A stretch of 64,000 nt of DNA from Callorhinchus milii (Eukaryota): NCBI RefSeq assembly GCF_018977255.1, contig NW_024704770.1, forward strand, positions 620,001 through 684,000. Direction: 5' to 3'. Shown here piece after piece: positions 27,953-53,316 of this stretch. Each line of letters starts with the position of its first letter. The first letter of the stretch is position 1. The notes beneath the pieces were generated by a model. The model did not search any database and was not told the DNA's origin. It saw only the letters and a list, made by a program, of their open reading frames with translations. A program made the position numbers and the translations under genes.

Positions 27953-28716
27953 GTCAGTGCAACCGAGTCATTCTTATCGAAGGATGGAATGTCTCTGTGT
28001 GTTTAATGTTAGAGAGCACACGGCTGAGGTCCAGTCCTCCATCTCCTCCCCCACCAACTGCTTCCGATGTTAAAAACAGGTGACAGATCAATAAACCCTC
28101 AGTGACATCACAGCCCATCACAGGGGCAGAGGAAGGACCACACGGCTCCTGTCGCTGTAATACCGCGTTCAGCCACAGAGGGCGGTGTTGCACTGCGGAG
28201 CCAACAATTCACAGCCAACACCGCCCTCTGCTGGTCACACCCCCTCCTCACCCTCACCAGCCCCGCCCCCTCCCCACCCAGCCCCGCCCCCTCCCCACCC
28301 AGCCCCGCCCCCTCCCCACCCAGCCCCGCCCCCTCCCCACCCAGCCCCGCCCCCTCCTCACCCAGCCCCGCCCCCTCCCCACCAGCCCCGCCCCCTCCCC
28401 ACCCAGCCCCGCCCCCTCCTCACCCAGCCCCGCCCCTCCTCACCCAGCCCCGCCCCCTCCACACCCAGCCCCGCCCCCTCCCCACCCAGCCCTCCCCCCC
28501 GCCCCCTCCCCACCCAGCCCTGCCCCCCGCCCCCCCCCCCGCCCCCCTCCACCCAGCCCCCCTCATCACAGCCCCGCCCCCTCCACACAGCCCGCCCCCT
28601 CCTCACCAGCCCGCCCCCTCCACACCCCGTCCTCCCCACCTCACACAGCCCCTCCCCCTCCTCACACAGCCCCTCCCCCTCCTCACACAGCCCCTCCCCC
28701 TCCTCACACAGCCCCT
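27953..28716 (+). repeat. Left arm of the inverted repeat bracketing the IgM locus (~300 bp unique plus GC-box minisatellite)
   Basis: Reverse complement of 53316 to ~52140. Contains AGTGACATCA (28101-28110), a 15-bp inverted pair (28176-28190 / 28216-28230) and (cccacccagccccgccccct)n. Confidence 0.9.
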
Positions 28717-30681
28717 CTCAGAGTGAAAGAGAAAGACAAACATTTTATTCTTTATTGAAAAACAAATATTAAGATATTTCCGTATTAAAATTTGAGAAAT
28801 AAACAGAAAATCTGTGAATGTTGTAAATGTGACGGAGGAAGGTTGAGGGATGACTTGATAAAGGCCTTTAAATTGGTAAAGCTGATATCGGGAATTTATT
28901 GCCAATGTTCAGTGAATTAGTGATTAAATGGCATCAATTTAAGATAGTTTGCAAATGAGCAAATGCTGACGTTAGGAGATTGTTTTTCACACTCAGATTT
29001 GTTTGGGTACGGAATGGGCCGATGGGAACAGTTGTTATGAAAGAATCCATATTATTTTTGAACATTGAGGCAGAAACAGAGATTAAAAACATAGTCATAT
29101 GTAGTGAATATGAAAAGGGAAGTAAATGGGACAGAAGATTTCTCTTAAATGAGCCGCAGACATACAATGGACAAATTAACTTCTCTGCACTGTAAATTTC
29201 TTTGGTTCTATGATTCAGGGAATAAAAGACACTAAATTATTGTTCTCTCAGATGTTGTTTCACATGAGGTAATCTTTCAAAGTATCTGCTTTAACACCTG
29301 TAGTATACAGCACATCCACACGCAATATAATAATCTTTACATGTTAGAGCACATGGTTCTTATCCAGAAGACGTGTTAAACGCTTCACATGATACACTGC
29401 AGAGTTTAGTGGCTGTATTTAGCACCGGCCATACAGTGTGTATCAGTCTGTTTCACACGGCAGCAGCTTTCGACAACATAATAAGACGCTGTCTGTACAA
29501 TTCAAACACTATTATCATATCCAGTAAAAGACTGTGTTGTGTTGTGGGGATTGTGGGTCTGAATATCTGGAGACATTCACTGCTGACTTTTCCAAACAGA
29601 GGTTCGGGATCTTTAATGTCCACAGAAACAGAGCGACCAAACCTCCGTCAGTACAGCTCAGCCCCTGCACTGCGTTGCAGTGCCAGACAGAAGTTCATCA
29701 GTTCACGTGCAGACGTGGGGCTTGAACCCACGGTGTCTGACTGACGGGCGAGAGCTGCCATTGAGCCGGGTTAATGCACACAGTTAGTGGTCGGCTCTGA
29801 GCTCAAAGTCTCAGTGTGGGGATTGAACCCACAACCTTTTGGCTCAGAAGAGAGAGTCCGGCCCAATGAGCCATGTGAATGGGCAGAGTTCAGGGGGTCC
29901 TCAGCTTTCAGACAGACAGAATTCAAGCATTTTAATGATTACATTTCTGGAAGATTTAAGCTTTGTAACATATGTATTCTGGTATTTGTCAGTGGTTTGT
30001 TATCAGGTAATATTAATGCTGTCGTGTGAAGTGTTCCCCGATAGTGATAAATGCCGATCAAGTTTTTATATCCTCTGCAGAACAATATCTGATCCTTTTA
30101 TTTGACAATTATTTGATTTCCACAGACATAAGGCGTGTGTGGGAGAACGCTCCGTGTTGTTGGGTGGAGTATTTGTAACCAGTTTCCAGCAGATGGTTTC
30201 AGGTCAGGTTTATATTATATTAAGAAGAAGCCGCTCTAATTTAGTGTCAGACAGTGCAGGTGTTTCCTGCGGATCAGAAACCGACTCCTTCTCAGATCAT
30301 CACGTGGCCAATGTCAATGATTTCTTGTAAATGTTGTTTGAACCACAGTGACCCGGGACAGCAGCATCCAGTCCAGTGTTTGTCAACGTCAATTTCTCTC
30401 CAAGTTATACATTGTAGACACATTTGTTGTTTTCTAATTTGCCTTTGGTTATAATAATAATAATAATAATAATAATCCTTGGCTTTGATATACCGCTTTT
30501 CACGTCGGGAGGACGTCCCAAAGCGCTTCACAGAACACACTGTAAAGTGAATTGACTGTATATTTGTGGGCGAACGCGGCAGTCAATTGCGCACAGCAAT
30601 GTCCCACAAACAGTCGTAGATTGAAAATGACCAATTTATTATTGTTTTGGGTTTTGGAGGGATTATTATTTATGGAGACCA

Positions 30682-30845
30682 AGGGAGGTGTGCGGGGGGA
30701 GAGGAGGGTGTGTGTGGGTTGGGGAGGTGTGCAGGGGGAGAGGAGGGTGTGTGTGGGTTGGGGAGGTGTGCAGGGGGAGAGGAGGGTGTGTGTGGGTTGG
30801 GGAGGTGTGCAGGGGGAGAGGAGGGTGTGTGTGGGTTGGGGAGGT
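30682..30845. repeat. 39-bp minisatellite, ~4 copies
   Basis: gggaggtgtgcagggggagaggagggtgtgtgtgggttg in tandem. Confidence 0.9.
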
Positions 30846-31759
30846 GTGTATGTGTCGGGGAGGTGTTCGGGTGGTGGAGAGGGTTTTGGTATCTCATTGG
30901 TGGTGAACTGACTCCAAGATATACACTTTGCAACAAAATACAGCATTTCAGTCAACCCTCTGTGGGGGTCTCGATCATTCTGTTCCTGAGCCAAGTGTCT
31001 CCTCGGTATTCCAGACGCTGCTGTTGACAAACCCGCCAGCCGGCCAGCCTGCCTCATTGGCAGGACCAGAGGGGCAAACTGGTCAAAGGGGGCATTGGAG
31101 ATTTGTTCAGTTCAGGTCCTGTTAACCCCTCAGGCCAAAGCACCAATGGATAGGAAAGTTCTAACTGCTCAAGAAATAGCAAACTCGCCAGACACGGCAT
31201 CCAATCTCCAGCTGTGGAGTTTAACTTGTTAGACTCCAGTAGTTGCACATCCCCAGCCTGAGCCTTACTAACCAGCGCCCACTGAATTACGTCGGATAGA
31301 TCTGTTCATCAGAGAAGGCCGTTACACATTCCATTCCACACAAAAAGAGTTTCCACTACTGTTGGTTTCCTGAAAAATAATTGAAATTAAACTGTTCCCT
31401 AAACAAAGCTCTGTCTCTTGTATCTCTGCTTAATGCAAATTCTTCATCAACCATCTTCTCTCTCTCTCCCTCCCACACACACAAACACATATAATCATAA
31501 TATAGTATAACCTCCAGATATATATTATGCCTCTCGATATATCTGATTTTATTCATTGTTCCTCATAGAACATGACTCCGACTGAGGGAATGAGTCTCTT
31601 TGCTCTCTGTCCAGTCTATTGCCCAGACCTTTACTTTGGACAATCAGTGATGGCCATTTGCAGTCTGAACAACTTCTGTGCAGCTTCATGATGATTTCTG
31701 AGGATTTGAGCCTTAATTGGCTCAGGATGTCGCCCAACATCCTGTGTGTCCTCTCGGCG

Positions 31760-32545
31760 CCATATCATGGCATGGTCTGTGCTGCTGTGGGATCATAGAG
31801 ATGAACATCCTTCTCTTGTTGCTGAATTCCTTTCTGCTAAGACATCTTTAACAAGATGTAAAATGCTTGGATTTCTACACCTGAATACAACGGTCGGAAA
31901 GTTAAGAAAGAGTTGTATTGGAAGTTTGAATCTCCTTGATATGGAAATGATTCACGGTCAAAATTCCACGAGGGTCGAGATTTACTCTATTGATGTCACC
32001 TTTTGATCATTGCAGAACTTGGCTCACTTTAGAAGCCAATACAAATGCTGTGACCAGTTGGCAGTCGCTGATACAAGAAACTTAACCAAAACTGGCTTTA
32101 AATTTATGGCAGTATTTCCAAGTTCTGGAAACACCAAAATTCTGCATCAAACAGTAAAGCGCAACAGAAGTGAGATTCCTGCCCTGTTGTGCTCATTCTC
32201 AGGGAGGGTATTGGGAGGAGGCAAGTTACACATACAGATTGGAGAGCTTACCAGAGGACATGGGCTGTCACCAAAAATCAAAACAAATCTGCAGAAACAC
32301 TCTCAGTCAGCGAGCAGTACATGTGTGGACACGGTCCCTGGGTAGACGGTTGAAGCTGAATGTGTTGATTCTTTCAAAAGCAAATGATCAATTTGTTGAG
32401 GAAATAATATGTTGGGATACAACATAGAGTTTGGGACAAGACTTGTGCATGTGACTGCCAGGATGGTGGACGGTGAACTGGATGGACCACAGTCTTCTTT
32501 TGTCCAGCAATTCTTATGTTCTTATGTTCCTCTTATATTCTATCT
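31760..32545 (+). mobile_element. Decayed CR1 LINE 3' region
   Basis: Ends in ggatggaccacagtcttc...(ttcttatg)n, a CR1-like terminus. Upstream RT C-terminal remnants. Confidence 0.55.
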
Positions 32546-33757
32546 GATCTCTTACAATGGATCCGATCAGATTAAAAGGGGATATAACTGAGGATATTAA
32601 AATACTAAGCGCAGGACAGATCAAGGGCTGTGCTTTATCTTAGAAGAATAATTAAGATAAATGTTACATCACATTTCTGTACTAAGAGGGTTACCAGTAC
32701 TCATTAACTACTCATTAACAACAACACAACTTGTGCTTATGTATCACCCTTCACACGGGGCAGTGTCCTGGAGCACTTAATGAACAGAATTGACTGCCGA
32801 GGCTTGATGAAAAGTCGGCAAAACTGAACTGGGTAAAAAGATAAAATTGCGGGTATATGGTGAGAGCGCTGGGAAATGGTTAATATGTGAGATATGCAAA
32901 CAGCAACTTAGAAAAAAACAACAGGTAACAATGGGCACAGAAAGGTCAGACCAAATGTGCTTCTGTGCGGTCAATGTCTGCGTTACTGAGCGATGATGAC
33001 AATTTTAATTCTTGATCTGTTCATTTTCTTGAAGTCAATTAAATTGAAAAGGGTAAAACGGTCAAGTGATTATTGCACGTGTCTGTCTGGGAAATAAATC
33101 ATTCAAATTAAATTAATGAAAGATGTACTTATTGTTCCTATTTTCTGAAAATAAATCATCTCAGTAATAATCCTTCGGGTTTGGTGTGACGAGTTTCCCA
33201 GCAAGAGAATGTCTGAAAGCGTTTCAAGGGTTTATTGACAAGGGAGAAGGACTGAAGGACTGAACCTCCAACAACACAGCGCAGCCCCAGCACAGCATTG
33301 GAGTATTTTACAACCACAGACTCCATTATGTTCAAGTCCTGATGTGGGTTTGAACCTAAAACCTGTGTCTCAGAGAGAGGACGTGTCAAGTGGCAGATAA
33401 ACATTCTCCCAACTTCAATGATTGGATCGAATGAGTAACCAGTTTCAGGGAAGATTCATGTCCCTAATTGTGAACTGTACAGTGTAAAATGTCTGACACA
33501 GAGACTTCATTACGACAGCAAAAACATCTCGAGGTTCAGTGGCTGAGAGCCGGTGTGCAGCGTGAATGAGAGGCTGTTTAAAACAGCAATGGGCTGTTAC
33601 CTTTATAACCACATTCAAGTGGTTGATAACCTTTTCTCCTTTTGTATTCACACTGTTTACTTAATTCTATACCTTCCAGACTGTATAGCAGCATTACTGT
33701 AACATTAATAAAATAATTACGATTGAAAAACTTTTATTGCCTGCAAGATCCTTAATT

Positions 33758-34076
33758 GTGGAGTCCTGTAGCTCAGTGGTTAGAGCACTCGCTTTGCAAG
33801 TGAGAGACCTGAGTTCAATTCCCGGCAGAGGGCGAAACCTTGGGCAAGTTTCCTTACTCCACACAGAGCCTAATAATAATCCCTCCAAAACCAAAAACAA
33901 TAATAAATTGGTCATTTTCAATCTACGACTGTTTGTGGGACATTGCTGTGCGCAATTGGCTGCGGCGTTCGCCCACAATATACCGTCAATTCACTTTACA
34001 GTGTGTTCTGTGAAGCACTTTGGGACGTCCTCCCGACGTGAAAAGTGCTATATCAAATGCGAGGATTATTATTATT
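33758..34076 (+). mobile_element. Full-length young tRNA-derived SINE
   Basis: A/B boxes (tagctcagtgg, gagttcaattcc), family body and (att)n tail. Confidence 0.9.
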
Positions 34077-35784
34077 AATACTTTACTTTCCCAGGAAAAT
34101 ATTGCTCCACATATCTGAATGATGTGTTATCAGATGTGGGTGAGGATGAGTTTATCTTTTGTGCTGAAGTCAGCGCACACTGTAGAAGCCGGAGAGACAC
34201 TGTGTGTAAACTCAGCCTGAAGGAGGGAGCGCCCGGAGAAAGTCAGTGGCTACTCAGCAAATACCAAAAGCTGAAACCACACACAATAATAAATCATGAC
34301 AGTAATCATTAGAAGGGAATGTTTTATATAACTATTCACACAACAGGGGATAAAGGGATTCAGATCAAATTGACACCGAGAGACTTTAGGCCACCAATCC
34401 TATCCGGTTTCAGCCTGGGAGGTTTATGCTGTTATTAATAACAATGATAATAATTGCCTTTGGTTTAGTGCCTCTCATGTCCGCAGGACGTCCCAAAGAG
34501 TTTCACAGATTAAACTGTGAAGAGGATCCTGAGCCAACGCGGCAGCTCAACTGCCCACAGCTGGAATTTGGGCTTTATGGTCTCCCATTGAGGTGCTGCC
34601 CGGCTCAGGTTGTCCAGCTCAGCACAGGCAGGAGATGAAGCTCTGTGAATGTAGTAAACAGATACCACTCACATTGTGCTATAAATACTCTAACACAGAG
34701 CTGTGTGTTACTATATTAGAATAGCCATGTGTCTGAAGCTGTATCTGGGTGTGGATCTGATCACCGGGGGACGGAAACAGCTGCTGGTCACTGAAGCCAA
34801 GAAGCTGCTCAAGTGAGAAATATTGTTGCCCATAAATGTTCTCAGCAAAACCTTAACTGAAGTTGGACGTTCATTCAACAGCTTTTGTTTAATGCTGAGC
34901 TTCTGTGAGTCTGAAGGATTTGGAAATCAGGAGGCAAGACACAATTGACACAAAAGAAAGAGGAAAGAGAGGATTCAAACAGCTCTATAAGTTTGATCAC
35001 TTTTATTGATATTTCAGGCAAACAATACACAGAATCTGTAGACTTTTCAAACAGGATCAGAACACAAAAGATCAACTTCAGATTAAAATCAAAGGGCAGA
35101 GTAGCTCAGCCACCGTATTTCTGGATCGTTACACCACACAAATGTTAAACAGCAAATAAAGAATATCAGAGACACGTGAGGGACGTTATATGAAATACCA
35201 ACATTAATTATTATGACCAAAAGGCACATTGCAAAATAAACTAACAATAAGGAAAGTCACTAAAGTTCACGAAGTTGCACAATACAATGTTTACTTCCAT
35301 CGAATTTGTACAATGGGTGAAAAAAGAGATCAACAACAACAAGATTACATTTGTACAGCGCCTTTCATGTTGAGAGGACGTCCCAAGGTGCTGGACAGAC
35401 AGACTTACGGACCTGAGCTGGGGATTGGGGTGGGGACAATGTGGAGGACAGGGGGAGAAGCAGGGAGATCAAAAGCACGGTCGAAGAGGAGGGTCTTGAG
35501 GTGGGTCTTAAAGGTGGCGAGGGAGGGGGTGAGGCTGAGGGACTGCGGGATGGAGTTCCAGAGGGTGGGGGCAGAGTGGCAGATTGTCCGCCTACCAATA
35601 GTGAGGTGAGCAAGAATGGGGACGTGATGTCAGCTGGAGCCCACTGACCAGAGGGAGCAAACAAGATGGTCGGGGGTTAGGAGGTCTGAGAGGTGCGGGG
35701 GGAGCATATCACATCATCTTTCGCAAGACATTGATATTAAACACAAACTGACCAGGACCATCGGTGAAGCTGATGTTAAGAAGC

Positions 35785-35793
35785 TCATATTAC
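35785..35793 (-). CDS. IGHM: IgM membrane exon TM2 (V-I-stop)
   Basis: Acceptor cttttattttccag|GTA ATA TGA, phase 0 after TM1. Confidence 0.7.
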   Translation of the reverse strand, partial: VI

Positions 35794-36304
35794 CTGGAAA
35801 ATAAAAGTAAAGATATGATGAATAATTTTAGCCTGGGTGGAGAGTTAGTATTTAAGCTGTGTTTATTGGTGTATATATCTCCACACATGCACACCAGCAA
35901 ACTCACACACAAACACATGCACACACACAAACACACACAAGTCCAATTGATACTGTATGAATGGGTTTGGAGCTGCCGGGGACTGACACAGGCAGAAACC
36001 CTTCTCTCGGCGGCTTTAAAGTGTCCACAATACATCAAAAGATCCACATAATGTGTAAATGAGTCTTGCCCCTGGCCTGTGTCTATACCAGGTGAGCATA
36101 TGTCAGGTGTAATGGGGTGTGTAAGGTGATAGGATATGTTCATCGCCCTCACACAGTCTGGTCACAGGGATACCTGCCCTATAGGGACAGGGGCAGTGTC
36201 CCAGCAGTGGCTGCAATGAGCATCACTGTCATGTTCCCATGGAACAAGTATTTAACAGCAGCTGTCACATCACATCAGGGCCTCAATGAATTTACTCTCC
36301 TCAC

Positions 36305-36435
36305 CTTAATTAGAGTGATGGCTGCGCTGTATAAAATACTCAGGAAGAAGAGAATGATGAAGGTGGAAGCAGTTGGCCAGAGGTTACCACTTCCATCTTC
36401 TAGAAAACCTTCCAGCATCATCTCGTTTGGGTACT
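36305..36435 (-). CDS. IGHM: IgM membrane exon TM1
   Basis: ctcacag|AG...ATTAAG|gtgagg. EYPNEMMLEGFLEDGSGNLWPTASTFIILFFLSILYSAAITLIK carries the conserved antigen-receptor TM (CART) residues. Confidence 0.95.
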
Positions 36436-37329
36436 CTGTGAGGATAAAAAAAGAAGAAATATATTGAGATGGGTTTGAAATCTGAAACTTTTCTTCTTTT
36501 CCCTGTTTGAGTATTAATGTGTACAAAGTTTCCCAGTTGATCATGGGTTCCCTCCCTCTATTGATCCACAAGACGTCTCCTGCCAGTTATTGCAAGCCTT
36601 TGATTTTCAGGGAAATAAAGAAAAAATTGATGGTATTGTTTGTTTATTTGTTCAGAAAAAGTATTGAATTCAGAGGAGAATTTTGGGAACACTTTGAGAA
36701 AATTGAATTTGTGGAATTTCAGAATGAAATCCTCCCACTGAGACTCTGTTGGTAGAAAAAGGACAGATCTTCCCCAATCCTCCAATTCCACCTTCCTGCC
36801 CTGTTTTTCTACACGATCATACAGTAACAACAACAACAACAAAATTACATTTATATAGCGCCTTTCACGTCGGGAGGATGTCCCAAGGTGCTGGACAGAC
36901 AGAGTTAAGGACCCGAGCTGAAGGTCGGTGAGGGGGAGGGGGAAGGGCAGAGGGTGACGTACAGAGATCGAAAGCATGATCAAAGAGAAGGGTCTTGAGG
37001 TGGGTCATGAAGATGACAAGGGAGGGGGCAGAACGAAGGGACTGCGGGATGGACTTCCAGAGGGTGGGTGCAGAGTGGCGGAAGGCCCACCCGCCGATAC
37101 TGAGGCGAGCGAGGCGGGGTACGTGATGCAGGCCAGAGCCCACTGAGCGGAGAGATCAAACAGAATGGAGAGGATGAGGAGGTCAGTGAGGTAGGGGGGG
37201 AGCAACAGCATGGAGGGCTTTGATGGGAGGACCAGTATCTTAAACTGTATCCACTGTGTGATGGGAAGCCGGTGGAGTTGGGCAACGTGACACCGTCATT
37301 AATCAAATAGCAATTCACATTCCTCTACA

Positions 37330-38050
37330 TTATGGTATTGTGATGAAGAATCCTATATTCTAAAAGATCCCGACATAAAAAATCTCCTCTTTATATTCTA
37401 CAGTGACTTTCCTGGATGTTTGATCCCGTGTGTATGGATACAATCGCCTTTCACGACATCAGTCTTTCAAAAGCTTCGTACATTTGAGAACTTGTATCTG
37501 CTTCTCTTCCCTATATTCTCTTTTATCTTCTCTTATCACCAGAACAGCCACAATGTTTGAAGCTAATCCTCATCACTGTAATGCCAATCACAAGCATCAT
37601 CTTTGTGATCTTTGTGAAACGGCCTTAAACCGCCTCAGTGGCTCTTATGTCCTTTGTATAATAGTGTCCAGAGCCACACACAGTGCTCCACCCACAATCC
37701 TACTAACTTTATATGTAATTGGCAATCGATTCCTACGAGAAAAAGACAGAATCCATGTTTATGATCTTTTGATATTGTCTCCCATCGATTTGTACTCTCC
37801 AAGTTTTCCCCGTTCCACTACTATCATCATTATTTTCCTGTATTTCCTTTAGTGATTATTTTTCCAAAATATACTTTAACAAACTGCTGTCTCAATATTG
37901 AACTGCATTTCAACCTTTCTGCCAATTCAGCTAAAGGGTCTGTAACTTCATGCAATTCCCCCACGATCTCCCTGACTGTGTCCCTTCCCCCTGTTATGTC
38001 ATCATAAACATTTTGTTGATAGATGGCATTGCCTGTTTCAAGATCGTTAA
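37330..38050 (-). mobile_element. CR1 LINE RT C-terminal fragment, decayed
   Basis: Minus-strand remnants of the CR1 RT C-terminus (EYCVQFW..Y..KDI-type and RFT motifs) with stops and frameshifts. Confidence 0.55.
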
Positions 38051-38439
38051 TGTTGTCAATTTACTTTACAGTGTATTCGCTGAAGCATTTGAGACATCTC
38101 AAAGATGTGATAAATATATCAAATGCAAGGAATATTATTATTATTGTTGTTCTAAAGCAACAGTGGAACCAGCACAAATGTCTAGTGAATCACCTGAAGG
38201 GATTGAGGATTAAGTGTAACAGGAGTCAGCCCTGAGCTCCATTGATTACCGCCTTTGCTGCTTGTGGCCCAGTGAGACTGATTGGGGACGGGATCTGAGA
38301 CTGACCCTCACTGTCAAGGTGATGTTTCGTGGTTCAGAGATTAAAACTTGTGCCATATTATCACAATCTGCAGATTCACTTCAGGCAAAATGGTGACAAT
38401 AATCTGTATTTATCACTGCAATGTATAGAAGGGGTGTGT

Positions 38440-39012
38440 GAGGTGCGTGTGTGTGAGTGTGTGTGGGCCTGGGTGGGTGTGAGTGTGTGTGGGCCTGGGT
38501 GGGTGTGAGTGTGTTTGAGTNNNNNNNNNNNNNNNNNNNNNNNNNNNNNNNNNNNNNNNNNNNNNNNNNNNNNNNNNNNNNNNNNNNNNNNNNNNNNNNN
38601 NNNNNNNNNNNNNNNNNNNNNNNNNNNNNNNNNNNNNNNNNNNNNNNNNTGAGTGTGTGAGGGCCTGGGTGGGTGTGAGTNNNNNNNNNNNNNNNNNNNN
38701 NNNNNNNNNNNNNNNNNNNNNNNNNNNNNNNNNNNNNNNNNNNNNNNNNNNNNNNNNNNNNNNNNNNNNNNNNNNNNNNNNNNNNNNNNNNNNNNNNNNN
38801 NNNNNNNNNNNNNNNNNNNNNNNNNNNNNNNNNNNNNNNNNNNNNNNNNNNNNNNNNNNNNNNNNNNNNNNNNNNNNNNNNTGAGTGTGTGAGGGCCTGG
38901 GTGGGTGTGAGTGTGTGAGGGCCTGGGTGGGTGTGAGTGTGTGTGAGTGTGTGAGGGCCTGGGTGGGTGTGAGTGTGTGTGAGTGTGTGAGGGCCTGGGT
39001 GGGTGTGAGTGT
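38440..39012. repeat. gagtgtgtgagggcctgggtgggtgt minisatellite with two N-gaps (38521-38649, 38681-38881)
   Basis: Tandem units on both sides of the gaps. Confidence 0.9.
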
Positions 39013-39567: not shown

Positions 39568-39959
39568 TCATTGACACGCATTCACGGTGTCCATCAGGAC
39601 CAGAGAAATGTTTACAAAACTCGGTTTACCGCTGGATTTGTTAACGGTTCTGGTCAGGGTCTTCAGTGGGAAAGCCTCATGTCCGACCACACAGGAGTAG
39701 GAGCTTCCTCTGTCCCACTCTCCGGCTGAGATGGATAACATGCTGTACATGGAGTAGTGGTGATGTGCACTGTCTGCCATCACCTCAGTGCTCTTGTAGT
39801 TTGTGGCATCAATCACCTGGTCATTCACAGTCCACTGCACAAAGATCTCTTTGGGAGTGAAGTCCTTGACCAGGCAGGTGAGGGTGACAGACAGCTGAGC
39901 AGACAATTCTTCTGCCGAGGGGAGGAGGAGATACACTGAAGGTTGTTTTGTGTACTCAA
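39568..39959 (-). CDS. IGHM: IgM Cmu4 plus secretory tailpiece
   Basis: cccacag|TT. C1-set domain ending [20 protein letters not shown] with NIS glycan site and penultimate Cys. Internal donor AGCG|gtaaa at 39630 serves the membrane form. Confidence 0.97.
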
Positions 39960-43385: not shown

Positions 43386-43737
43386 TAACAGCTCAAAGTC
43401 CCCTCGTGACCAGTTTAATGCAGAGAATCAGACAGTGTCTCTGTGGTTATAACATTAATTATAAACCATCCCAGACTCAAATATTTACTGCTCTTCCTCC
43501 GAGGAACTTTGTTTAAAGATTTAAGGTCTTGTGGCATTTTGAAAAGCAGCTGAAATCAATTGCTTTCCTTTAATTTGCAAATCCTCTATTGAATTAGACA
43601 ATAAATATTGATTTCAAGATTATTCAGACTCAGCATAATCTTATATTTTTATGCAATCATCTGAAAATGAAAAACACGAGCCTTTCAGGCTCTGACATGG
43701 ATTAAAGCGGTTACTCTGTTCAGATTGGTTACAGAAT

Positions 43738-43939
43738 AAACCCTCCAAAAAAACAAAATAATAATAAATTGGTCATTTTCAATCTACGACTGTTTGTGGG
43801 ACATTGCTGTACGCAATTGGCTGCCGCGTTCGCCCACAAATATACAGTCAATTCACTTTACAGTGTGTTCTGTGAAGCGCTTTGGGACGTCCTCCCGACG
43901 TGAAAAGCGTTATATCAAATGCAAGGATTATTATTATTA
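43738..43939 (+). mobile_element. 5'-truncated SINE with 27-bp target-site duplication
   Basis: ttactctgttcagattggttacagaat at 43711-43737 and 43940-43966. Confidence 0.85.
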
Positions 43940-44121
43940 TTACTCTGTTCAGATTGGTTACAGAATCGTCACAGCCAATTTCGCACCTGACAGCTGCTGT
44001 GTGGTGTTAGAAATAGTACATTCATTATTTATCTGATTATTGATGGATTTTGGTCTCTATTTAACTCTTTTATCCACAAAACTAGAGAGACCGTATATTG
44101 GTCAGGTTCAGTGTTTCACAT

Positions 44122-44456
44122 AATAACAATAATAATAATAATAATCGTTGCATTTGATATAGCGCTTTACACGTCGGGAGGACATCCCAAAGCGCTTCAC
44201 AGAATATACTTTAAAGTGAATTGACTGTATATTTGTGGGCGAACGTGGCAGCCAATTGCACACAGCAATGTCCCACAAACAGTCGTAGATTGAAAATGAC
44301 CAATTTATTATTTTTTTTGTTTGTTTTTTGGAGGGATTATTATTAGGCTCTGTGTGGAGTAAGGAAACTTGCCCGAGGTTTGGCCCTCTGCCTGGAATTG
44401 AACTCAGGTCTCTCACTTGCAAAGCGAGTGCTCTAACCACTGAGCTACAGGACTCC
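44122..44456 (-). mobile_element. Full-length SINE, inverted relative to 43738-43939
   Basis: Same family as 33758-34076. Confidence 0.9.
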
Positions 44457-46815
44457 GAGGCTATATACATGAGGAATGAAGGACTGTTCTCAGTGTTGTG
44501 CCCAGGACAAGCCTCTCACAGGGAATCCTGTCTGACTGGTGACTGTGATCAGGGGAACCTGCAGCAGCCGCAGCCCAGCGCGGAACGGAGACACAGAAAT
44601 AGCCACATTTACGAGTATCTGTGTCACACATCAGCTCTGAAATGGTTAAATAAAGGCAGAGGTCGCTGTGCGGGGGTTTGATGTCAGTGACGCTGCATTG
44701 ACTAAGGAGCAAAACACTTTTACATTCATATATCGGAATATAATTATTATAATAATTCCTGCATTTGATGTAGTCCCTCACCACATCTTCGAGACGTCTC
44801 AAAGCGCAACACAGAATATAATGGATTCAGTCACCAAATTATTATTATTTTGAAGGGATTATTAGCCTCGGAAAAGCGATCCGTGAATGCACTGAAAATG
44901 GGTTCCTGCTGACTGCTGGTAAACAGCGGTGTGTGGGGTCAGGAAACTTGCCCAAAGTTTGGCCCTGACCTGTCGGGAATCAAACCCGGGGCCTCTCGCT
45001 TGTGCGGCGAGTGCTGTAACCACTGAGCTACAGGACTTCACAGAATGGATAACATTCTGCTTTGCTTCACAGTCTGTATTAACCTGAATTGTCTCAGATT
45101 TCTGGGGTGACAGTTAGATGTCCTGTTGTCATGTTGTGGTCATGTCACCCAGACTGACAGACAGAGGCAGTGGTGTAGACACTGGACAGCAAGTGGGATG
45201 GGATCTGTGGGGCTGTTCCCTGACCCCCGGACACCGGGTTGTTAGTGATAAATAAATTGAATAAAACGTTGATTTGATAAAACCAGAGACTAATCTCACA
45301 CTGGAAGACCATTCTCTCTTTACCTTCAGATTTGGTGGAAGTGTTTAATAACCTTAAATTCACTTTAAATTTGGAATCCGGTTCTCCTTAAGGACTCAGG
45401 AAACCTGTTTCAGACATCACACGGAATATAACAATTGTTCACAATTCTGCGCGATTTTACACTTTACCACAAAATGGTCTCCACACGGCCTGAGGGTCAG
45501 TGGGTTTCTCAGCCTCTGGGAAGATATTTATCAAAACAAACCTTCCCATTGCCCTTTCCTCCCCCGGGGTCTGAGGGTCAAACATGAACCCAACTCCACA
45601 CAGTCAGACATCGCGGTTCAGCCGTTTGCTGTTCCACCGCTCAATGCCGTTTAATCACAACGCGAACTCTCACATCTCAAACACAAACGGTTTCCATCCA
45701 ATAACCCACATGTTACTCTATATTCCCTTTCCCTCTGAGAGCGGAAGCCCTCAGTAACTGCACAGCAGCGCACACACTGTCCTTCCACATCACACATGAA
45801 GCACTGGACACTGTGCGATGTCACTCACACTCACAATTCCCCGCAGCGCAAACAGTGACACAGAACAACTAAATCATATATTTACAGTCAAATGACAAAC
45901 TGCTTCCTTTCACCCTCATCTCTGCCGACTCTGGAGTGTGAGCTGATCATCTCTGAAATCATTAGTTTGGTGTCAGTGACCAGTGTCACTGTGTGTTAAC
46001 CATCTCATAAACAACTGGATCTCTGACATTGCAGCTGTAATTCAGACTTTACCATTTGTTTATTGATAAAATCTGTGTTTTTCTGCAGAGCAGTTGGTGT
46101 AAAACAGGAAGATGATGATTATAGATCAACACCGACCTCTTGTGTCTGATCACTGTGAGGAATCGAGGTCTTGTTCACTCGATTGCTGTTAAAATCAATT
46201 GAAATGAAGTCTGAGCTCAAACTGTCACTGACTAAAATTCGCTATTATTTCTGTAACATCCGTGTAGATTGAGTCGCTGTATTTTCAATCACATCCCCGC
46301 AGTATAAACCCGTTTTACTCTCAGACTCACCCCCACTCCCAGATGAGCAGCTTTAAACCGCAGCCAAGTTCCTTATATTAAATGATGGATTGAAATACAC
46401 GTTGGAAGTGATCAGATAACCTTCCGTCACTCATCCGCAACATTCAGGCCCTGATTCCCAACACGTGGACATAGTTTCAAACAGATTTATACATTTCCTG
46501 ACGATATTATACACGAAAAACACAGCCATCAGTCACTGCGACCAGACATTGAGGAAAGTCCATCAGTTAAACCTCAGCTGATATTCACAAACCACCAAAA
46601 ATATCACCATCAATGAATTAAACATTGAGAGAATAATTCATAAAGGAACAGTGACTGTTGAAAGCAACAACAGCTGAACCCCTTTAACGTGCATTAAACT
46701 CTGAGAAAGCCGAGCAACGCGGAGCTCATTAAATGCAATAGCTGTTAAAGTGAACAAAACAAACGTATAAAGAGACAAGTTCAGTGCAGTGAGTGACTCA
46801 GTGTCTGTTTCTTAC

Positions 46816-46863
46816 CGTTAGTCACAGTCACGATGGTGCCTCGTCCCCAGTAGTCAAGGTAGT
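46816..46863 (-). CDS. IGHJ: JH segment (YLDYWGRGTIVTVTN)
   Basis: WGxG motif; donor AACG|gtaag, phase 1 to Cmu1. Confidence 0.95.
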
Positions 46864-46901
46864 CACTGTGCTCCAGTCAGTGGCCGCCCACTGCAACAAC
46901 C
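46864..46901 (+). other. JH recombination signal (22-nt spacer)
   Basis: cactgtg-22-gcaacaacc. Confidence 0.85.
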
Positions 46902-47244
46902 TACTGTGAGGGCAGAGCACACACACACAATATTACTGTCAATGTTGGCTTCCCCCAAACCAAATGCAGGTCACCATATATTGCTGTAATGTTCTGAGAA
47001 CTATTGCCCCTCTCTCTCAGTGTTTACCTGTTAAATGTTTGTGTGTTTGCCAGTTTGCAGTGTTCCTGCCAAACACCTTTTCTTGTCACCATCAGATTCA
47101 AGATTACATTTTATGTTTTATGTCCATTAAAATATGGTAAAATCCTCAGCGATCGGCACCATTTTCAAAAGACCAAATCCCCGCACATTCATTGGGACCC
47201 ACACAAGCGAACAGTGAGAGAGATTGTCTGGTTTGGTGTTGAAG

Positions 47245-47311
47245 AGTTTTTGTATTGACAGTGAATGCTGTGGTCCATGTTGACACAGTGATACTCACTG
47301 TGACACAAACT
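47245..47311 (-). other. IGHD: D2 segment (47273-47283, tcaacatggac) with 12/12 RSSs
   Basis: agtttttgt-12-tgctgtg [D] cacagtg-12-acacaaact on the + strand. Confidence 0.9.
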
Positions 47312-47621
47312 CCTGAACAGGATGATCTAATAAATATTGACCTGGAATTTCAGACAACGACTGGACCTCAGCTCAGATTCTCCAGTGAAGCCTCAAGTGA
47401 TGTTTCAGTCAAAATAAATGCTGCTGTTTATCAAAGACTTTGGATTAATGTTCGGGCAGAATCCCAGACCTCAATCTTGTTATCAACATCCTGTAATCTA
47501 ATTTAATCTGAAATCATCTGTAAAATACCAGGTTCGTTCTGAGAATGCCCACGTTCAGTAACATTTATTTTGGTGCTGTGGGTGTTGTAGTGATGACTGG
47601 GGTCAGCGGGCTCTCTGGTGG

Positions 47622-47699
47622 GGTTTTTGTATGAGGAGGTGACTGTGTGCAGCATTGTGACTCCCGGTACACACAGTGACACAGTCCCATACAAATACT
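47622..47699 (-). other. IGHD: D1 segment (47660-47671, tgtaccgggagt) with V-side 12-RSS and J-side 22-RSS
   Basis: ggtttttgt-22-cattgtg [D] cacagtg-12-acaaatact on the + strand. Confidence 0.9.
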
Positions 47700-48116
47700 G
47701 ACCCCCAATGTTGGCTCAGTACCGGCTGCCAAAATTGACTGAAAGGGACTATTGTCCTCTGACGTGACGTAGAGTCTGTCTAATAGTTTCTTCATATCCA
47801 GAGAAACAGAAAGCAATGATGTCCAACAGCTTGTAACAAGATGATGTGTGTGAACCGTCACATAGTCAGTCTCCAATCGCAGTCCTTCCCACCTCAACAG
47901 TAGTGTCACTGACCATCTGAAATCACAGAATATTACAGCACAAATCAGCAGCTCATTCACCCCAATCAAACCACGATTCACTGTGTAGGTTTAGTCTGAG
48001 AATAAATCCATCTTCAGCTTTTCCTTCAAACTTGGCTACAGACACAGCATTGACACCATGGATGTCCATCAGTCAGTTTAGGGTGGGAGGGGCTGCCTTA
48101 GCCTTTCCACCCCTTG

Positions 48117-48155
48117 AGTATTTGTAGGAGTTTAGCCCCATTTCCTCTCACTGTG
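48117..48155 (-). other. VH recombination signal (23-nt spacer)
   Basis: cacagtg-agaggaaatggggctaaactcct-acaaatact on the minus strand. Confidence 0.95.
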
Positions 48156-48461
48156 AGTTTCTTGCACAGTAATAGATGGCGGTGTCCTCCACTGTCGGGC
48201 TTTTGATGATCAAATCGAAGATGTTATTGGAATTCTCTTTGATGACAGTGACACGGTTTTGAATACCAGGCGCATAGTACTGGTAGGCTGAGCTGTGATA
48301 CATGAGGAGCCATTCCAGCCCCTTCCCAGGAACCTGCCGGACCCAACTCATGTAGTAGCCACTGAGATCAAAGCCGCTGGTTTTACAGGTCAGTAGCAGG
48401 GCCTGGCCAGGCTTCCCGGTTAGAGACGACGGCTGTGTCAGCACCACATCGGCCTGGACAT
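48156..48461 (-). CDS. IGHV: VH exon, intact
   Basis: ccttacag|[13 protein letters not shown]...LTCKTSGF...[12 protein letters not shown]...[10 protein letters not shown]. Confidence 0.97.
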
Positions 48462-48577
48462 CTGTAAGGAATAAATGACCGAAGATGAATGATGGCGAAA
48501 TCTCCTGTCTCTGTGACGTTGCAGAGAGAATAACACCAACACAGGAACAGTGAGACTGTCAGAATAATAGTACTCAC

Positions 48578-48623
48578 GGGAGAAGACAGCCAGCAGCAGA
48601 CTGAGAGACATCAGGGACCTCAT
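48578..48623 (-). CDS. IGHV: VH leader exon (MRSLMSLSLLLAVFS)
   Basis: ATG, hydrophobic signal peptide, donor C|gtgagt phase 1. Confidence 0.93.
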
Positions 48624-48714
48624 GTTTCTGGCCACTTGTCAGAACTGAGACTTGTGCCGAATAACCGAGGGCCAAAGAGCTGCCGGACAGATGGCCTCAG
48701 TCCCCAGTGACCGC

Positions 48715-48786
48715 TATTTAACAAGGCCCAGTGGGGCAGGGGGTTGAGAATGGACCAATAGCTCCAGGACTGAGGGGAGTCACGTG
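48715..48786 (-). promoter_or_regulatory. Putative VH promoter: TATA-like TTAAATA (48715-48721), CCAAT (48755-48759), E-box CACGTG (48781-48786)
   Basis: Motifs lie 90-165 nt upstream of the ATG. No exact octamer seen. Confidence 0.5.
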
Positions 48787-48959
48787 TCACATTCCCTCTG
48801 ATCTGCACAGAGCAATAATTGTACCTTTACATTCTGCATTTACAGCAAATTAATATTAATATAAGTCTCAATAGTATTAGCCCTCGCGCTCACCCTGAAG
48901 CATCGGCAATTGCTTCCTTCCAGGTGTTTGTGTGTATGTGTGTGTGTGGGGGGGTCGGG

Positions 48960-49215
48960 GGGAGGGGATCAACTCTAAATAAAACTGCAGAAGCACTATC
49001 CAGGGAGCGAGTGGTAAAGGTTCGGAACAGACTCCCTGAGGAGACGGTGGAAGCAGAAAGTCTCAATTCTTTCTGAAGCAATTTAGTTCATTACTTTTAG
49101 TAAATAATAACATGGGATACAGTATATTGTTTGGGACATTGCGTGTTCCTGTGACACCCAGAATGGTGGATGGTGAGCAAAGTGATCTTTTTTGTCGAGC
49201 AATTCTTATGTTCTT
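48960..49215 (+). mobile_element. CR1 LINE 3' end fragment
   Basis: Degenerate RVV..WN.LP..VEA-type remnant and ttcttatgttc tail. Confidence 0.55.
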
Positions 49216-52139
49216 CGAATACTACTGATTATTATTATGATAACCGTTGCATCTGATAGAGCACCTTATCACATCGTTGAAACATCTCAAAGTGCTTTCC
49301 AGAATGTGTGTTCAAGTGCAGTGACTGTGTATTTTTTGGGCAAAAATTAATACTGTATCTTAATATAAAATATTCAGTATTTCCTACGGTTTAGCGAAGT
49401 TCTGATCTATTGTAGATGATTGTCCTCTATTTCATATCCTCCAATCTTGATTTCATATCCCACTTGGGCATAAAGACAAGAATCTTATTGCTTCCCCAAC
49501 CGCTGTTTTTCCGGGGAAAGATTTATAAAAGACTTTCATTTTAATCTTTATTTTAATCTACATTCCTTGTTATTTTAATCTATCTTCTATTCCACCTGTT
49601 GTCAGTGTGCTTTACCTTACACCTATTTTCCTCTCTGTTCTCATGCCTTGAGGAAGCCTCTTTTGGAGACTATATCGGTGTTATGTTTGGCCACAATGTT
49701 TATTTCTGTTCTCATGGAAATCGCGTAAAATTCAGCATTTAACACACTTCCCATTCTAATCCTTCCTGTTCTCAATCTCTGTATTTACTGAAATCACAAA
49801 CTTGATTGTCCATTTCACAATGTAATGGTTGTGAATGGTTTGATGTGGTGGCTTATGCTCTCAAGCCGGGCATGAAACCGTGTCACGTTTGCAAGCGAGA
49901 GACCCGGGTTCGATTCCTGGCAGAGTGAAACCTTGGGCAAGTTTCCTTACCCCACACGCCTGATAATATGATAATAATACCTCAAAAAAATAATAAATTG
50001 GTCATTTCAATCCACGACTGTTTGTGGGCTCTGCTGTGTGCAATTGGCTGCCGTATTTCGCCCACAAATATACAGTCAATTCACTTTACACACTATTATG
50101 TGAAGCACTTTGAGAAGTTTAGAAGACATGAAAAGCGCTGTATCAAATGCAAGGATTATTATTGTTAAACCATCACTTGGGGTGAGAAGCCGGATGGCGA
50201 GGGCTGCTGGTGCAGTCGGAGCCCAGTGAAATGTAAGGACAGTAACACTCCTTCAGGACAAGGAGAGAAGAAACTGGAGGAGAAAACTGCAAAGAAAACA
50301 CGTGAAGTTTGAATCAGAAGTGGATTCAGTGCGGCTTTCCCCCAACTCCCGAATCCCTGAAGCTGTCAGTAACTGCGAGGGAGAGAGTATCAGGGAGTGT
50401 GTGTAGAGCGCCCTGACTGTCTGATGCTGATGTCCGGTTACCTCATGGATTGTTGACCAGTAAACTGACAAAAACACCTTTACCTTTTCCAAGTGGTGTT
50501 ATAGGATTTTCAAAGCCACTTGACCCGGGAGAGAGGACTCGGAACCTGTAACAACATCTACAGGAGCCGATAATTTACAGCAAATCTGTCAGAACACAAC
50601 AGAAATCTCCACATCAGGAAAGACATCAATGTCACGGCTCCTAAACAACAGGACACAGAACAGCTCCGTGTGTGGCTCCTCACAAAATACCCCGACTTTG
50701 AGGGAACCTGAAGCTCAACATCATTCCAAGTTATTTTCATTCTTGTTCTTGATGATTGTTGTTGGAGACACTTTTCTCCTGACATGAACAAGGTTTGTAT
50801 TTGCTGAATGTCAGGACAATCCTGGTGATCAGTCTCTCGGTGATGTGTGACTATTTCTAATCACATCTTGTTCTACATCAGTGTGTTTCTGGTTTATTGA
50901 GAGTTTTTCCCGCCCAGTGGTTCATATTGTTTCTTGTTCCATTGAAGGAATGGCCAAGGCGGCTGGAGCCGGCACCGGCTTCTGTGGGAATTCCCTCTAA
51001 CTCCATTTCCCAGCGTTGTCTCCATGTACCTTCATGTCCTGACTTATTAAATACCAATTCTTCCCTCTTCCCAACGTCCCAAATGGCTGTGTCTGTGGCC
51101 TCCTGAGGCTGTTGGTTCCATCCAATGTGTATCTCTACACAGTCTCATTGTGAAAATGTCATCAAGTGTTGGAGTATCTGAACAGTGGACAGTTTCTATT
51201 GTGCAGTATATCTCTGGTGTAATGTGGCAGAGACGGACAGATTAATTACCCAGAAAATAGTCTACCCTCAGCTTGTGATATGGCTTTTTATTGTCCGGTT
51301 GCCTTTGTTAACCCATTTTCTGCATTGTCTGTAATTTTCTTACATAATAAATGAATCAATAAGAGGCGATGGCTTTATTTAGCAACTTACATAAATGCTG
51401 GAAAGTTCTGTGTCTTTATATTGTTATATTGTTTTGTGTTTCTTTCTGTTACTGACAATTCAAGACGGTGAGTTTACAGGAAATGATTGTTTGCCGACGT
51501 TACAGCACAGTGGACGTTGCTGAGCAGCTCATTAGCAAAGTGCGGAACACGATGCTGTTCTGTGTGTGTGGAGTCTCCGGTTGAGCGCAGTCTGGACAGT
51601 GGCTTCACACAGGAGGAGTCCGACTGCCTTCAGGTGGGGCGGCCGCACAGAGCACAAGTGTCAGGAAGCGGCTGTGACTGTGCTCCGTCAGTCAGTGATC
51701 AGCTTCCGGCGCTCACACCCGGAGCCACAGTCTGACCTCTCGTACACTATTCCCCTTCACACCAACAGCGACAACAGCAGCAGCAGCTGTCGGGGCATCG
51801 CAAGTGGCTGCGATTGGTAAACCATTGATGGCAGAATAAAACGTAACAACAACAACTTGCACTTATACAGCGCCCTCCACGCAGGATAGCGCCTCAGAGC
51901 GCCTCTCAGTGCCGGAGCCTGACTCCGAGCCCAGGGGTGGGACGTGGCCGTAAGCACCGTTAGAAAGGAAGGCTTTCAGGCGGGACTTGAAAAAGGGGAG
52001 AGAGGGGGCGGAGGGATTGAGGGACAGTGTTCCAGGGTTTCAGGGCGTAGTGGCTGGAAGTGCGACCTCCGATGGTGGGGCAGAGGGTGTGAGGGACGAG
52101 CAGGAGACGGGGCCAGTGAGGAGCTGCATGAGGAGGCGG

Positions 52140-53316
52140 AGGGGCTGGGTGAGTAGGGGGAGGGGTTAGGTGTGGAGCGGGCGGGGCTGTGTGAGGAAGT
52201 GGTGGGGCCCGGTGAGGAGGGGGCGGTGTTGGGTGAGGAGGGAGCGGGGCTGGGTGGGGAGGGGGCGGGGCTGGGTGGGTTTGGAGGGGGCGGGGCATGG
52301 TGAGGAGCGGGATGTGCTTGGTGAGTAGGGGGAGGTGTTAGCTGTGGAGGGGCGGGACTGGGTGAGCAGGGGGAGGGGCTGGGTGAGTAGGGGGAGGGGT
52401 TAGGTGTGGAGTGGGCGGAGCTGTGTGAGGAAGGGGTGGGGCCCGGTGAGGAGGGGGCGGGGCTGGGTGAGGAGGGGGCGGGGCTGGTTGAGCAGGGGGC
52501 GGGGCTGTGTGAGGAGGGTGCGGAACTGGGTGAGGAGGGTTAGGGGCTCGGTGAGGAGGGGGCGGGGCTGGGTGAGGAGGGGGCGGGGCTGGTTGTGGAG
52601 TGGGTGGGGCTGGGTGTGGAGTGGGTGGGGCTGGGTGGGGGGGTGGGGCTGGGTGAGGAGGGGGCGGGGCTGGGTGTGGAGTGGGCGGGGCTGGTGGGGG
52701 GTGGGGCTGGGTGTGGAGGGGGCGGGGCTGGGTGTGGAGGGGGCGGGGCTGGTTTGAGGGGCGGGGCTGTGTGAGGAGGGGGCGGGACTGGGTGGGTGTG
52801 GAGGTGGAGTTGGCGGGGCGGGGTGTGGAGGGGGCGAAGCTGGTTGGTGAGGGGGTGGGGCTGAGTGAGGTGTGGGAGGGGCTGGGTGAGTAGGGGTTAG
52901 GGGTTAGGTGTGGAGGGGGCGGGGCTGGGTGAGGAGGGGGCGGGGCTGGGTGGGGAGGGGGCGGGGCTGGGTGGGGAGGGGGCGGGGCTGGGTGGGGAGG
53001 GGGCGGGGCTGGTGAGGGTGAGGAGGGGGTGTGACCAGCAGAGGGCGGTGTTGGCTGTGAATTGTTGGCTCCGCAGTGCAACACCGCCCTCTGTGGCTGA
53101 ACGCGGTATTACAGCGACAGGAGCCGTGTGGTCCTTCCTCTGCCCCTGTGATGGGCTGTGATGTCACTGAGGGTTTATTGATCTGTCACCTGTTTTTAAC
53201 ATCGGAAGCAGTTGGTGGGGGAGGAGATGGAGGACTGGACCTCAGCCGTGTGCTCTCTGACATTAAACACACAGAGACATTCCATCCTTCGATAAGAATG
53301 ACTCGGTTGCACTGAC
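52140..53316 (-). repeat. Right arm of the inverted repeat bracketing the IgM locus (longer GC-box array)
   Basis: 53316-53015 is the reverse complement of 27953-28255 with very few mismatches. Decamer at 53159-53168; 15-bp inverted pair at 53039-53053 / 53079-53093. Confidence 0.9.

Follow-up and report, generated by a model that had tools for sequence, protein, structure and literature searches.

Inverted copies of a non-coding module around an IgM cluster of Callorhinchus milii: evidence favouring upkeep by local recombination

The IgM cluster described here lies between two copies of one non-coding module in inverted orientation, and this duplication is real. The evidence favours two arms that are kept alike by local recombination over an Ig-specific boundary element. 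The window, that is, the whole stretch of DNA that was analysed, is 64 kb of Callorhinchus milii (NW_024704770.1 of GCF_018977255.1, 620,001-684,000 of the forward strand), and the coordinates below are positions in it. The arms pair as an inverted repeat, 27937-28369 with 52900-53332, over 433 nt that are 98% identical without gaps, and BLAST lengthens the pairing to 27937-28716 versus 53332-52542. It had been claimed that the sequence at 27953-28255 recurs inverted and it does, at 53316-53014, where the 303 bp of this unique module carry a single mismatch (T/C at 28010), that is, 99.7% identity and a K2P distance of 0.003. Five further mismatches between the arms are grouped in 27937-27952 and, therefore, the module boundary is truly at 27953. 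At the other end the identity persists into the first 4-5 units of a minisatellite, with one extra unit in arm L. The near-identical tracts of the two arms are as follows.

27953 to 28360, plus strand: arm L, the 303-bp unique module and the first 5 minisatellite units
52928 to 53316, minus strand: arm R, the unique module (53316-53014) and the first 4 units

The differences across this tract of ~390-410 bp are one substitution and one 21-bp indel, and it is to this length, not to the full 0.8-1.2 kb, that the description of the arms as near-identical applies. Past unit 4-5 no register of the two arrays aligns above about 82% identity and just 7-14% of the 30-mers of distal arm L are present in the arm R array; the distal minisatellite arrays of the two arms are not orthologous. 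No homology was found in the outer or the inner flanks of the arms, and a search for a larger palindrome taking in the receptor genes on both sides gave dispersed SINE tails only. Within the 64-kb window there are two young copies of the module and one old copy, and no others. The arrays themselves are the following.

about 28252 to 28716, plus strand: 21-bp C-rich GC-box minisatellite of arm L, 22.7 copies
about 52129 to 53017, minus strand: 21-bp minisatellite of arm R, 42.2 copies, many of them degenerate variant units

The GC-box minisatellite expected in each arm is thus present, with 15 perfect GC-box nonamers in arm L, 17 in arm R and a single one in the rest of the window. The arrays have 74-81% G+C and a CpG o/e of 0.62-0.68, and so they have the GC boxes and the CpG o/e of >0.6 over >200 bp by which Sp1 GC-box/CpG-island sequence is recognised. 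The CpG o/e of the unique module is 0.50 versus 0.48 for the whole window.

Between the arms is an intact minus-strand cluster with RSSs, in the order L-V-D-D-J-Cmu1-4-TM1, which confirms that a complete V-D-D-J-C-TM unit is bracketed. Its parts are listed here.

48156 to 48622, minus strand: VH segment, with the leader exon at 48622-48577 and the V exon at 48461-48156
48155 to 48117, minus strand: VH 23-spacer RSS
about 47671 to 47660, minus strand: D1, with RSSs (D-J block 46816 to 47699)
about 47283 to 47273, minus strand: D2, with RSSs
46863 to 46816, minus strand: J, with RSS
approximately 42318 to 42009, 41362 to 41048, 40738 to 40427 and 39960 to 39568, minus strand: Cmu1-Cmu4 exons
36305 to 36399, minus strand: TM1 exon
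38521 to 38649 and 38681 to 38881: two assembly gaps inside a 26-bp GT-rich minisatellite of the Cmu4-TM1 intron

Since both gaps lie between the Cmu4 stop (39568) and TM1 (36399), the reading frames are unaffected, and the GT-rich repeat has the same register and orientation on both sides of the gaps and in the 31-bp island between them. The gaps leave only the arm-to-arm distance (about 24.5 kb) uncertain. Searches with VH and Cmu1 returned UniRef entries of Callorhinchus milii only. Rhodopsin-type receptor genes are found on both sides of the cluster and there is a neighbouring 12.4-kb tandem duplicate whose copies, at 93.8-98.0% identity, are less alike than the unique modules of the arms; the locus is in a region rich in duplications.

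We propose that the arms are an older local inverted duplication, the unique part of which has been homogenised by gene conversion or re-copied, an explanation towards which we lean without holding it firmly. The duplication would be local and would not be brand new because the distal arrays have diverged. Ectopic gene conversion between the arms would keep the unique part identical; alternatively, recent re-copying by recombinational repair may have begun inside the G-rich, break-prone arrays. The abrupt switch from near-identity to non-orthologous arrays is the pattern that a conversion tract of a few hundred bp would leave (for the lengths of such tracts see PMC3961182). The pattern would look the same whether the arms were copied once, very recently, or have long evolved in concert. 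The native copy is probably arm L, and the original duplication could have been a by-product of an inversion with staggered breaks. Rejoining the presumed ancestral junctions restored no split repeat, a result that is uninformative for inversion. Inverted duplications at one or both inversion breakpoints are on record with lengths of 46 bp-1.9 kb, the median being 321 bp (Ranz et al. 2007, PMC1885836). Like these staggered-break duplications, the arms are non-repetitive sequence inverted at the two ends of a segment and their size is in that range; in that system, as may be the case here, often only one breakpoint region is duplicated (PMC1885836). The Drosophila duplicates, however, are about 88% identical, whereas the arms are 99.7% identical and end inside a minisatellite, and a past inversion of the enclosed segment is hypothetical here.

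The same arms bear on what may happen to the cluster. They are on one chromosome, are inverted relative to each other and are nearly identical over several hundred bp, as inverted-duplication/NAHR pairs are, and judged by length and similarity they are adequate candidate substrates for inversion. NAHR between them could flip the roughly 24.5-kb cluster, and flipping a self-contained V-D-D-J-C unit should be harmless. The original prediction also had the arms serving to multiply Ig cassettes, and this part falls away because inverted repeats flip a segment and cannot multiply it, while the part on inversion is plausible. Among human polymorphic inversions, segments of 5-226 kb have been inverted recurrently by way of the inverted repeats around them (Aguado et al. 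2014, PMC3961182). Like those human inverted segmental duplications, the arms stand on either side of a segment that is tens of kb long and contains genes, and they have a stretch of very high identity, where exchange is likely to take place, and are otherwise diverged; the tract of identity here is only about 0.4 kb, versus 1.6-24 kb for the human repeats (PMC3961182).

The abrupt switch also raises the question whether the bracket is an assembly artefact, in which case the contig at 27386-38520 would be chimeric, joined inside the minisatellite, and the left module would belong elsewhere. The identity switch does fall in a repeat of the kind that short-read and Sanger assemblers collapse, and 567 bp separate arm L from a contig end beside a gap (27194-27385), with the switch 950 bp from that end. 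However, arm L runs on without a break into an outer flank unlike that of arm R, the two arms are set apart by one substitution and one repeat unit, and TM1 is in the same contig and correctly oriented relative to Cmu4. The context is also coherent, with the same C-rich minisatellite on both sides of the gap and a diverged copy of the module just left of it. We therefore regard an artefact as very unlikely.

It is somewhat less improbable, although still unlikely in our view, that a young dispersed repeat, a transposable or TE-derived element ending in tandem repeats of variable number and carrying a CTCF-type motif, was inserted twice independently to give the arms, and that they are in opposite orientation by chance. 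CTCF sites borne on TEs are known in other vertebrates. The arms have a common sharp 5' boundary, near-identical unique parts and tails of variable length, and SINEs have been recently active in this genome, the copies in the window being 94-97% identical. Against this, the arms are without target-site duplications, terminal repeats, a tRNA-like head or coding capacity, and when their flanks were read directly no TSD, TIR, LTR, poly(A) or pol III boxes were found at them. No Rfam or tRNA match was accepted in the arms, and tRNA-derived SINE heads are present elsewhere in the window. There are no copies or fragments of intermediate divergence elsewhere in the 64 kb, whereas the real transposon families in the window have at least five copies across a range of identities, which the module does not resemble. 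Both distal arrays are old and degenerate, unlike those of young insertions. In addition, a search of 5.8 billion proteins with the arm's 79-aa ORF gave no match; because the ORF did not recover even itself, that database is without ORF-level data from this genome.

The remaining alternative is that the arms are dedicated boundary and regulatory modules, with a CTCF insulator and a GC-box plus CRE promoter-like part, of an independently regulated IgM minilocus and that they recur at other IgH clusters. We find this unlikely. The core consensus CCASYAGRKGGCRSY was scored and sequences with up to one mismatch were counted as matches. The sites in the arms are these.

28220 to 28234, minus strand: perfect CTCF core match of arm L, 0 mismatches, pointing outward from the Ig cluster
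53035 to 53049, plus strand: perfect CTCF core match of arm R, 0 mismatches, pointing outward from the Ig cluster
28176 to 28190, plus strand: weaker opposing CTCF-type half-site of arm L, 3 mismatches in the 5' part of the core
53079 to 53093, minus strand: weaker opposing CTCF-type half-site of arm R, opposing the perfect match at 53035

The 15-bp inverted pair with a CTCF-like arm that had been reported is exact, 28176-28190 with 28216-28230 across a 25-nt spacer, and one of its halves matches CCASYAGRKGGCRSY with 0 mismatches. The predicted sites in one arm are one E-box, one ETS-like site and one CTCF-type site, and on its sequence the module may bind CTCF. Under the duplication that we favour, too, each edge of the cluster would then have one consensus CTCF-type site and one weaker opposing site, and these predicted sites may insulate the cluster from the rhodopsin-type receptor genes on either side. 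Matches to the core are enriched in the window, with 4 versus 0.59 expected, all four of which are inside two inverted pairs, and predicted CTCF-type sites are in every intergenic interval of the window (10185, 26500, 28220 and 53035). These findings, with the perfect core match in both arms, argue for a boundary. On the other hand, both strong sites face outward: the two perfect arm sites are divergent across the cluster, unlike the convergent motifs of CTCF loop anchors, and only the 3-mismatch half-sites (28176, plus strand, and 53079, minus strand) converge. Moreover, the uniform 99.7% identity across 303 bp suggests recency or conversion and not selection on a motif, and two bamboo-shark IgH loci, scanned from 10 kb 5' of V up to and including the C exons, have no match to the CTCF consensus.

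Three related elements to the left of arm L also bear on the boundary explanation.

26622 to 26960, plus strand: older direct copy of the module, diverged, with two anchor blocks kept in collinear order
10116 to 10251, plus strand: element e1, with an RSS-like signal at 10127-10166 and a CTCF-type core at 10185-10199, forward, one mismatch
26448 to 26583, minus strand: element e1', an inverted copy of e1, with a CTCF-type core at 26500-26514, reverse, one mismatch, and a degenerate heptamer

The old copy is 1.3 kb left of arm L, a position that speaks for the local duplication that we favour, and a C-rich minisatellite then spans the gap at 27194-27385. Its anchor blocks are 26622-26640 (84% identity) and a 42-bp CTCF-type block at 26874-26915 (88%), which scores 59 versus 19 +/- 2 in shuffles. 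Most of the rest cannot be aligned and the CTCF-type block is the only part of the module that is retained, which gives some weight to a functional site and hence to a boundary, with the limits that this is one old copy and that gene conversion is possible. The elements e1 and e1' are 97% identical over 136 bp (K2P 0.030, versus 0.003 for the arms), and e1 has the 20-mer CAGAGGGCGGTGTTGCACTG in common with the arms. Because e1 and e1' bracket non-Ig genes as an inverted pair, the motif is not restricted to Ig genes in this window. In e1 the RSS-like signal and the CTCF-type core are 18 bp apart, which again favours a boundary by its resemblance to the arrangement in mouse, where the proximal VH genes carry RSS-adjacent CTCF sites.

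Mammalian IgH loci have several CTCF-binding elements (CBEs), namely, IGCR1, the 3' CBE cluster and the VH RSS-associated CBEs. The locus described here is like them in that predicted sites with the consensus CTCF-type motif flank an antigen-receptor unit on both sides, several predicted sites are grouped on the 3' side of the constant region (26.5-28.2 kb), as in the 3' CBE cluster, and one related site is 18 bp from an RSS-like signal, as in the VH RSS-associated CBEs. It is unlike mammalian IgH in that the strong sites face outward, the unit is a 12-kb minilocus and not a translocon, and the motif also flanks non-Ig genes. Taken as a boundary module, then, each arm has its CTCF-type motif and GC-box array, as was proposed, and has against it the outward perfect sites, the motif around non-Ig genes and the two bamboo-shark loci.

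The promoter part of that proposal did not hold up. The decamer AGTGACATCA occurs once in each arm.

28101 to 28110, plus strand: decamer of arm L
53159 to 53168, minus strand: decamer of arm R

At least two matches to AGTGACATCA were obtained in 16 of 100 shuffles and, therefore, the count is not above chance. The decamer was found only in the arms, 3.4-4.7 kb away from the V leader; arm R has it about 4.5 kb upstream of the leader ATG (48622) and arm L about 8 kb beyond TM1. A TCR V-beta decamer/CRE is AGTGAYRTCA within about 100 bp upstream of the V-gene start site, and there was no AGTGAYRTCA in the 700 bp upstream of the VH leader and no perfect octamer near the VH promoter. A decamer that is at chance level and absent from the cluster's own VH promoter is not borne out as a promoter element, and this too counts against the boundary explanation.

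The local inverted duplication that we favour has consequences of its own. Two identical inverted arms of 0.4 kb predict an inversion polymorphism, and the locus is a concrete test case for the independence, movement and orientation of multicluster IgH in cartilaginous fishes. If the module is private to this locus, the finding is an ordinary inverted segmental duplication. At the other extreme, and we give it little credence, CTCF-type elements may already partition antigen-receptor DNA per IgH cluster in the chimaera, with a palindromic pair of sites insulating each end, a relative 18 bp from an orphan RSS, arms made identical by conversion and a cluster that can be flipped. If this were true, loop-extrusion-type control of V(D)J loci would predate translocon loci.

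Three other origins or functions of parts of the arms were considered and dropped. Arm R as the 3' end of a LINE fragment (54357-53863) fails because the intervening sequence is unrelated and composite. The inner end of the arm R minisatellite adjoins a 5'-truncated SINE copy (51966-52170), and growth of the minisatellite from the 5' part of this SINE was discarded because the alignment is suggestive for one unit only. The palindrome as an RNA gene was rejected since its miRNA-like Rfam match is sub-threshold (23 bits versus a cut-off of 95.5). The palindrome folds well (z = -4.6), and it is the palindrome that drives the fold z-scores of the whole module.

The inverted repeat predicted around the IgM cluster is borne out: one such cluster is genuinely flanked by an inverted duplication. 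Self-comparison of the window placed the starts of its two copies, arm L and arm R, at 27937/27953 and 53332/53316 in inverted orientation, and base-by-base comparison of 27953-28255 with 53316-53014 gave one mismatch in 303 (28010, T/C). In a 433-nt ungapped match the remaining five mismatches all fall within the outermost 16 nt, and therefore the true edge is 27953, as had been predicted. When the flanks were compared within the window, no homology was found between the outer flanks of the two arms or between the inner ones. The unique part of each arm passes into a 21-bp C-rich minisatellite.

Features of the two arms
28220-28234, minus strand, CTCF core consensus match with 0 mismatches, one half of the 15-bp pair of arm L
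28252-28715, minisatellite of arm L, 21-bp C-rich unit, 22.7 units
52129-53017, minisatellite of arm R, 21-bp C-rich unit, 42.2 units
53035-53049, plus strand, CTCF core consensus match with 0 mismatches, one half of the 15-bp pair of arm R

Perfect GC-box nonamers number 15 and 17 in the two arrays, and just one more occurs elsewhere in the window. The initial 4-5 units are common to both arms, arm L having one more; past these the arrays have no common register (best diagonal at most about 82% identity), and of the 30-mers in the distal array of arm L just 7-14% recur in arm R. Telomere-like CCTAACCCCTAACCCC variant units are present at 52880-52905 in the arm R array and absent from arm L.

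Between the arms lies a complete, unrearranged heavy-chain cluster, encoded on the minus strand, with every component of the expected V-D-D-J-C-TM series.

Immunoglobulin and receptor genes
1353-2288, plus strand, intronless rhodopsin-family receptor ORF
13709-14359, plus strand, intronless rhodopsin-family receptor ORF
36399-36305, minus strand, TM1, normal splice sites
stop at 39568 (Cmu4), minus strand, Cmu1-4, normal splice sites
minus strand, D1, D2 and J, each with RSSs
48461-48156, minus strand, V exon, with 23-spacer RSS
ATG at 48622, minus strand, leader
57081-58007, minus strand, intronless rhodopsin-family receptor ORF

At the protein level, VH (75%) and Cmu1 (70-96%) best match Callorhinchus milii entries. 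The leader ATG is 3.5 kb downstream of the end of arm R, and arm L starts 7.6 kb past TM1. Receptor ORFs in convergent orientation flank the cluster on either side, and it sits embedded within a receptor gene array. The gaps at 38521-38649 and 38681-38881 are both within one GT-rich 26-bp minisatellite, whose unit and orientation are unchanged to the left and right of them and in the 31-bp island that separates them. Both are intronic, lying between the Cmu4 stop and TM1; they interrupt no reading frame, and the arm-to-arm distance alone is estimated. Copies of a tRNA-Ala-derived SINE occur in and around the cluster (30451-30670, 33760-34080, 43735-43942, 44108-44456 and 49888-50167); with identities of 81-97%, they show that SINEs have been active recently in this genome.

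The inverted pair, two 15-bp halves separated by a 25-nt spacer, proved exact, and its predicted CTCF-like character holds for one half, which matches the core consensus perfectly, while the opposing half has three mismatches in its 5' part. Four core matches with at most one mismatch occur in the window, against 0.59 expected, and all four are located in inverted-repeat pairs. The putative CTCF-type content of the arms is credible. The decamer AGTGACATCA, likened in the original prediction to a promoter element, did not fare as well: in the window it is found in the arms only, yet 16 of 100 shuffles gave at least two matches, and neither it nor a perfect octamer was found within 700 bp upstream of the leader. 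The unique part also has one each of an E-box and ETS-like, RUNX-like and CRE-like sites, which are not evidence because these motifs were picked after inspection. A 23-bp stretch of the J-Cmu1 intron (46127-46149, minus strand), some 700 bp downstream of J, resembles the CTCF-type word of the arms, with G changed to T at one core position; it could be a decayed site or a chance resemblance.

The perfect CTCF-type sites point outward, in reverse on the left and forward on the right, instead of forming the simple loop that had been implied; toward the cluster only the weak halves of the 15-bp pairs converge. If these sites bind CTCF, the cluster would lie between two outward-facing anchors, an arrangement compatible with its insulation from both neighbours. 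No match to the CTCF consensus was found in two bamboo-shark IgH loci, in a span that starts 10 kb upstream of V and ends with the C exons, and therefore this would not be a general rule across cartilaginous fishes.

The 20-mer CAGAGGGCGGTGTTGCACTG of the arms recurs at 10189 (plus strand) and 26491-26510 (minus strand), and these further copies fall within a second, likewise young inverted pair, e1/e1'.

Elements related to the arms
10116-10251 and 26583-26448, inverted pair e1/e1', 136 bp, 97% identity, sharp edges, 16 kb apart
26622-26640, surviving block of a diverged module copy
26874-26915, surviving 42-bp CTCF-type block of the diverged copy, 88% identity, score 59 versus 19 ± 2 in shuffles

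The CTCF-type cores of e1 (10185, forward) and e1' (26500, reverse) are convergent, and the second receptor gene and tail exons at 20883-25118 lie between them. Within 10127-10205, e1 has an RSS-like signal, CACTGTG followed by a 24-nt spacer and ATAAAAACC, the top nonamer match of the entire window; the CTCF-type core begins 18 bp past this signal. The RSS scan picked up the genuine signals of V, D1, D2 and J, and at the stringency of the e1 signal it gave 0 matches in 200 shuffles. No V coding sequence was found upstream of it, and this orphan signal may be what is left of the 3' flank of a V segment. An ORF upstream has, by eye, a reverse-transcriptase-like YADD motif and no Pfam match.

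The diverged module copy is a direct one, 1.3 kb left of arm L, of which two collinear blocks remain, followed by a C-rich minisatellite. Arm L thus belongs to a small group of related modules clustered locally, and for this reason is probably the native copy. Four diverged units of about 160-230 bp, each opening with GAAGTGACTG (26460, 26690, 26859 and 27020), span 26446-27193; they take in e1' as well as the older copy of the arm's CTCF-type block, and make up a group of CTCF-type sites on the 3' side of the Ig cluster. A third gap (27194-27385), 567 bp outside arm L, is also within the C-rich minisatellite. It is unlikely that a chimeric assembly join lies inside the minisatellite of contig 27386-38520, because the C-rich minisatellite is the same on the far side of this gap, the old module copy adjoins and TM1 is correctly oriented.

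In the arms and their flanks we looked for a target-site duplication, a terminal repeat, a tRNA-like head, coding capacity and an Rfam match, and found none. The window has no copies of the arm module of intermediate divergence, whereas its true SINE families have many copies at 70-97% identity. Duplications left by staggered-break inversions have a median size of 321 bp, reach 1.9 kb and often sit at a single breakpoint (PMC1885836), and the original inverted duplication of the arms fits these in size and form. Joining the presumed ancestral junctions restored nothing. The distal arrays of both arms are degenerate and unlike each other, and thus the 0.3% divergence of the unique part understates the age of both loci. 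The near-identity covers a few hundred bp, with one limit at the edge of homology and the other inside the repeat array. Gene conversion, with tracts that usually extend over a few hundred bp (PMC3961182), would yield these limits; recombinational repair begun in the arrays would give the identical pattern. Most likely, the inverted duplication is local and was homogenised by recombination, and the structure is a new example of already known kinds. Fragility of loop anchors has been reported (PMC6066925), and one may speculate that this explains the CTCF-type site at the centre of both inverted pairs. We infer that the arms suffice as substrates of non-allelic homologous recombination and that such an exchange would flip the cluster; the suggestion that Ig cassettes are multiplied in this way does not hold, because recombination between the arms would only invert. 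Elsewhere in the window, C-rich minisatellites at 3986-4250, 16495-16741 and 56123-56275 start right behind a conserved SINE-family body, and therefore minisatellites in this genome seem to be seeded by SINE 3' regions.
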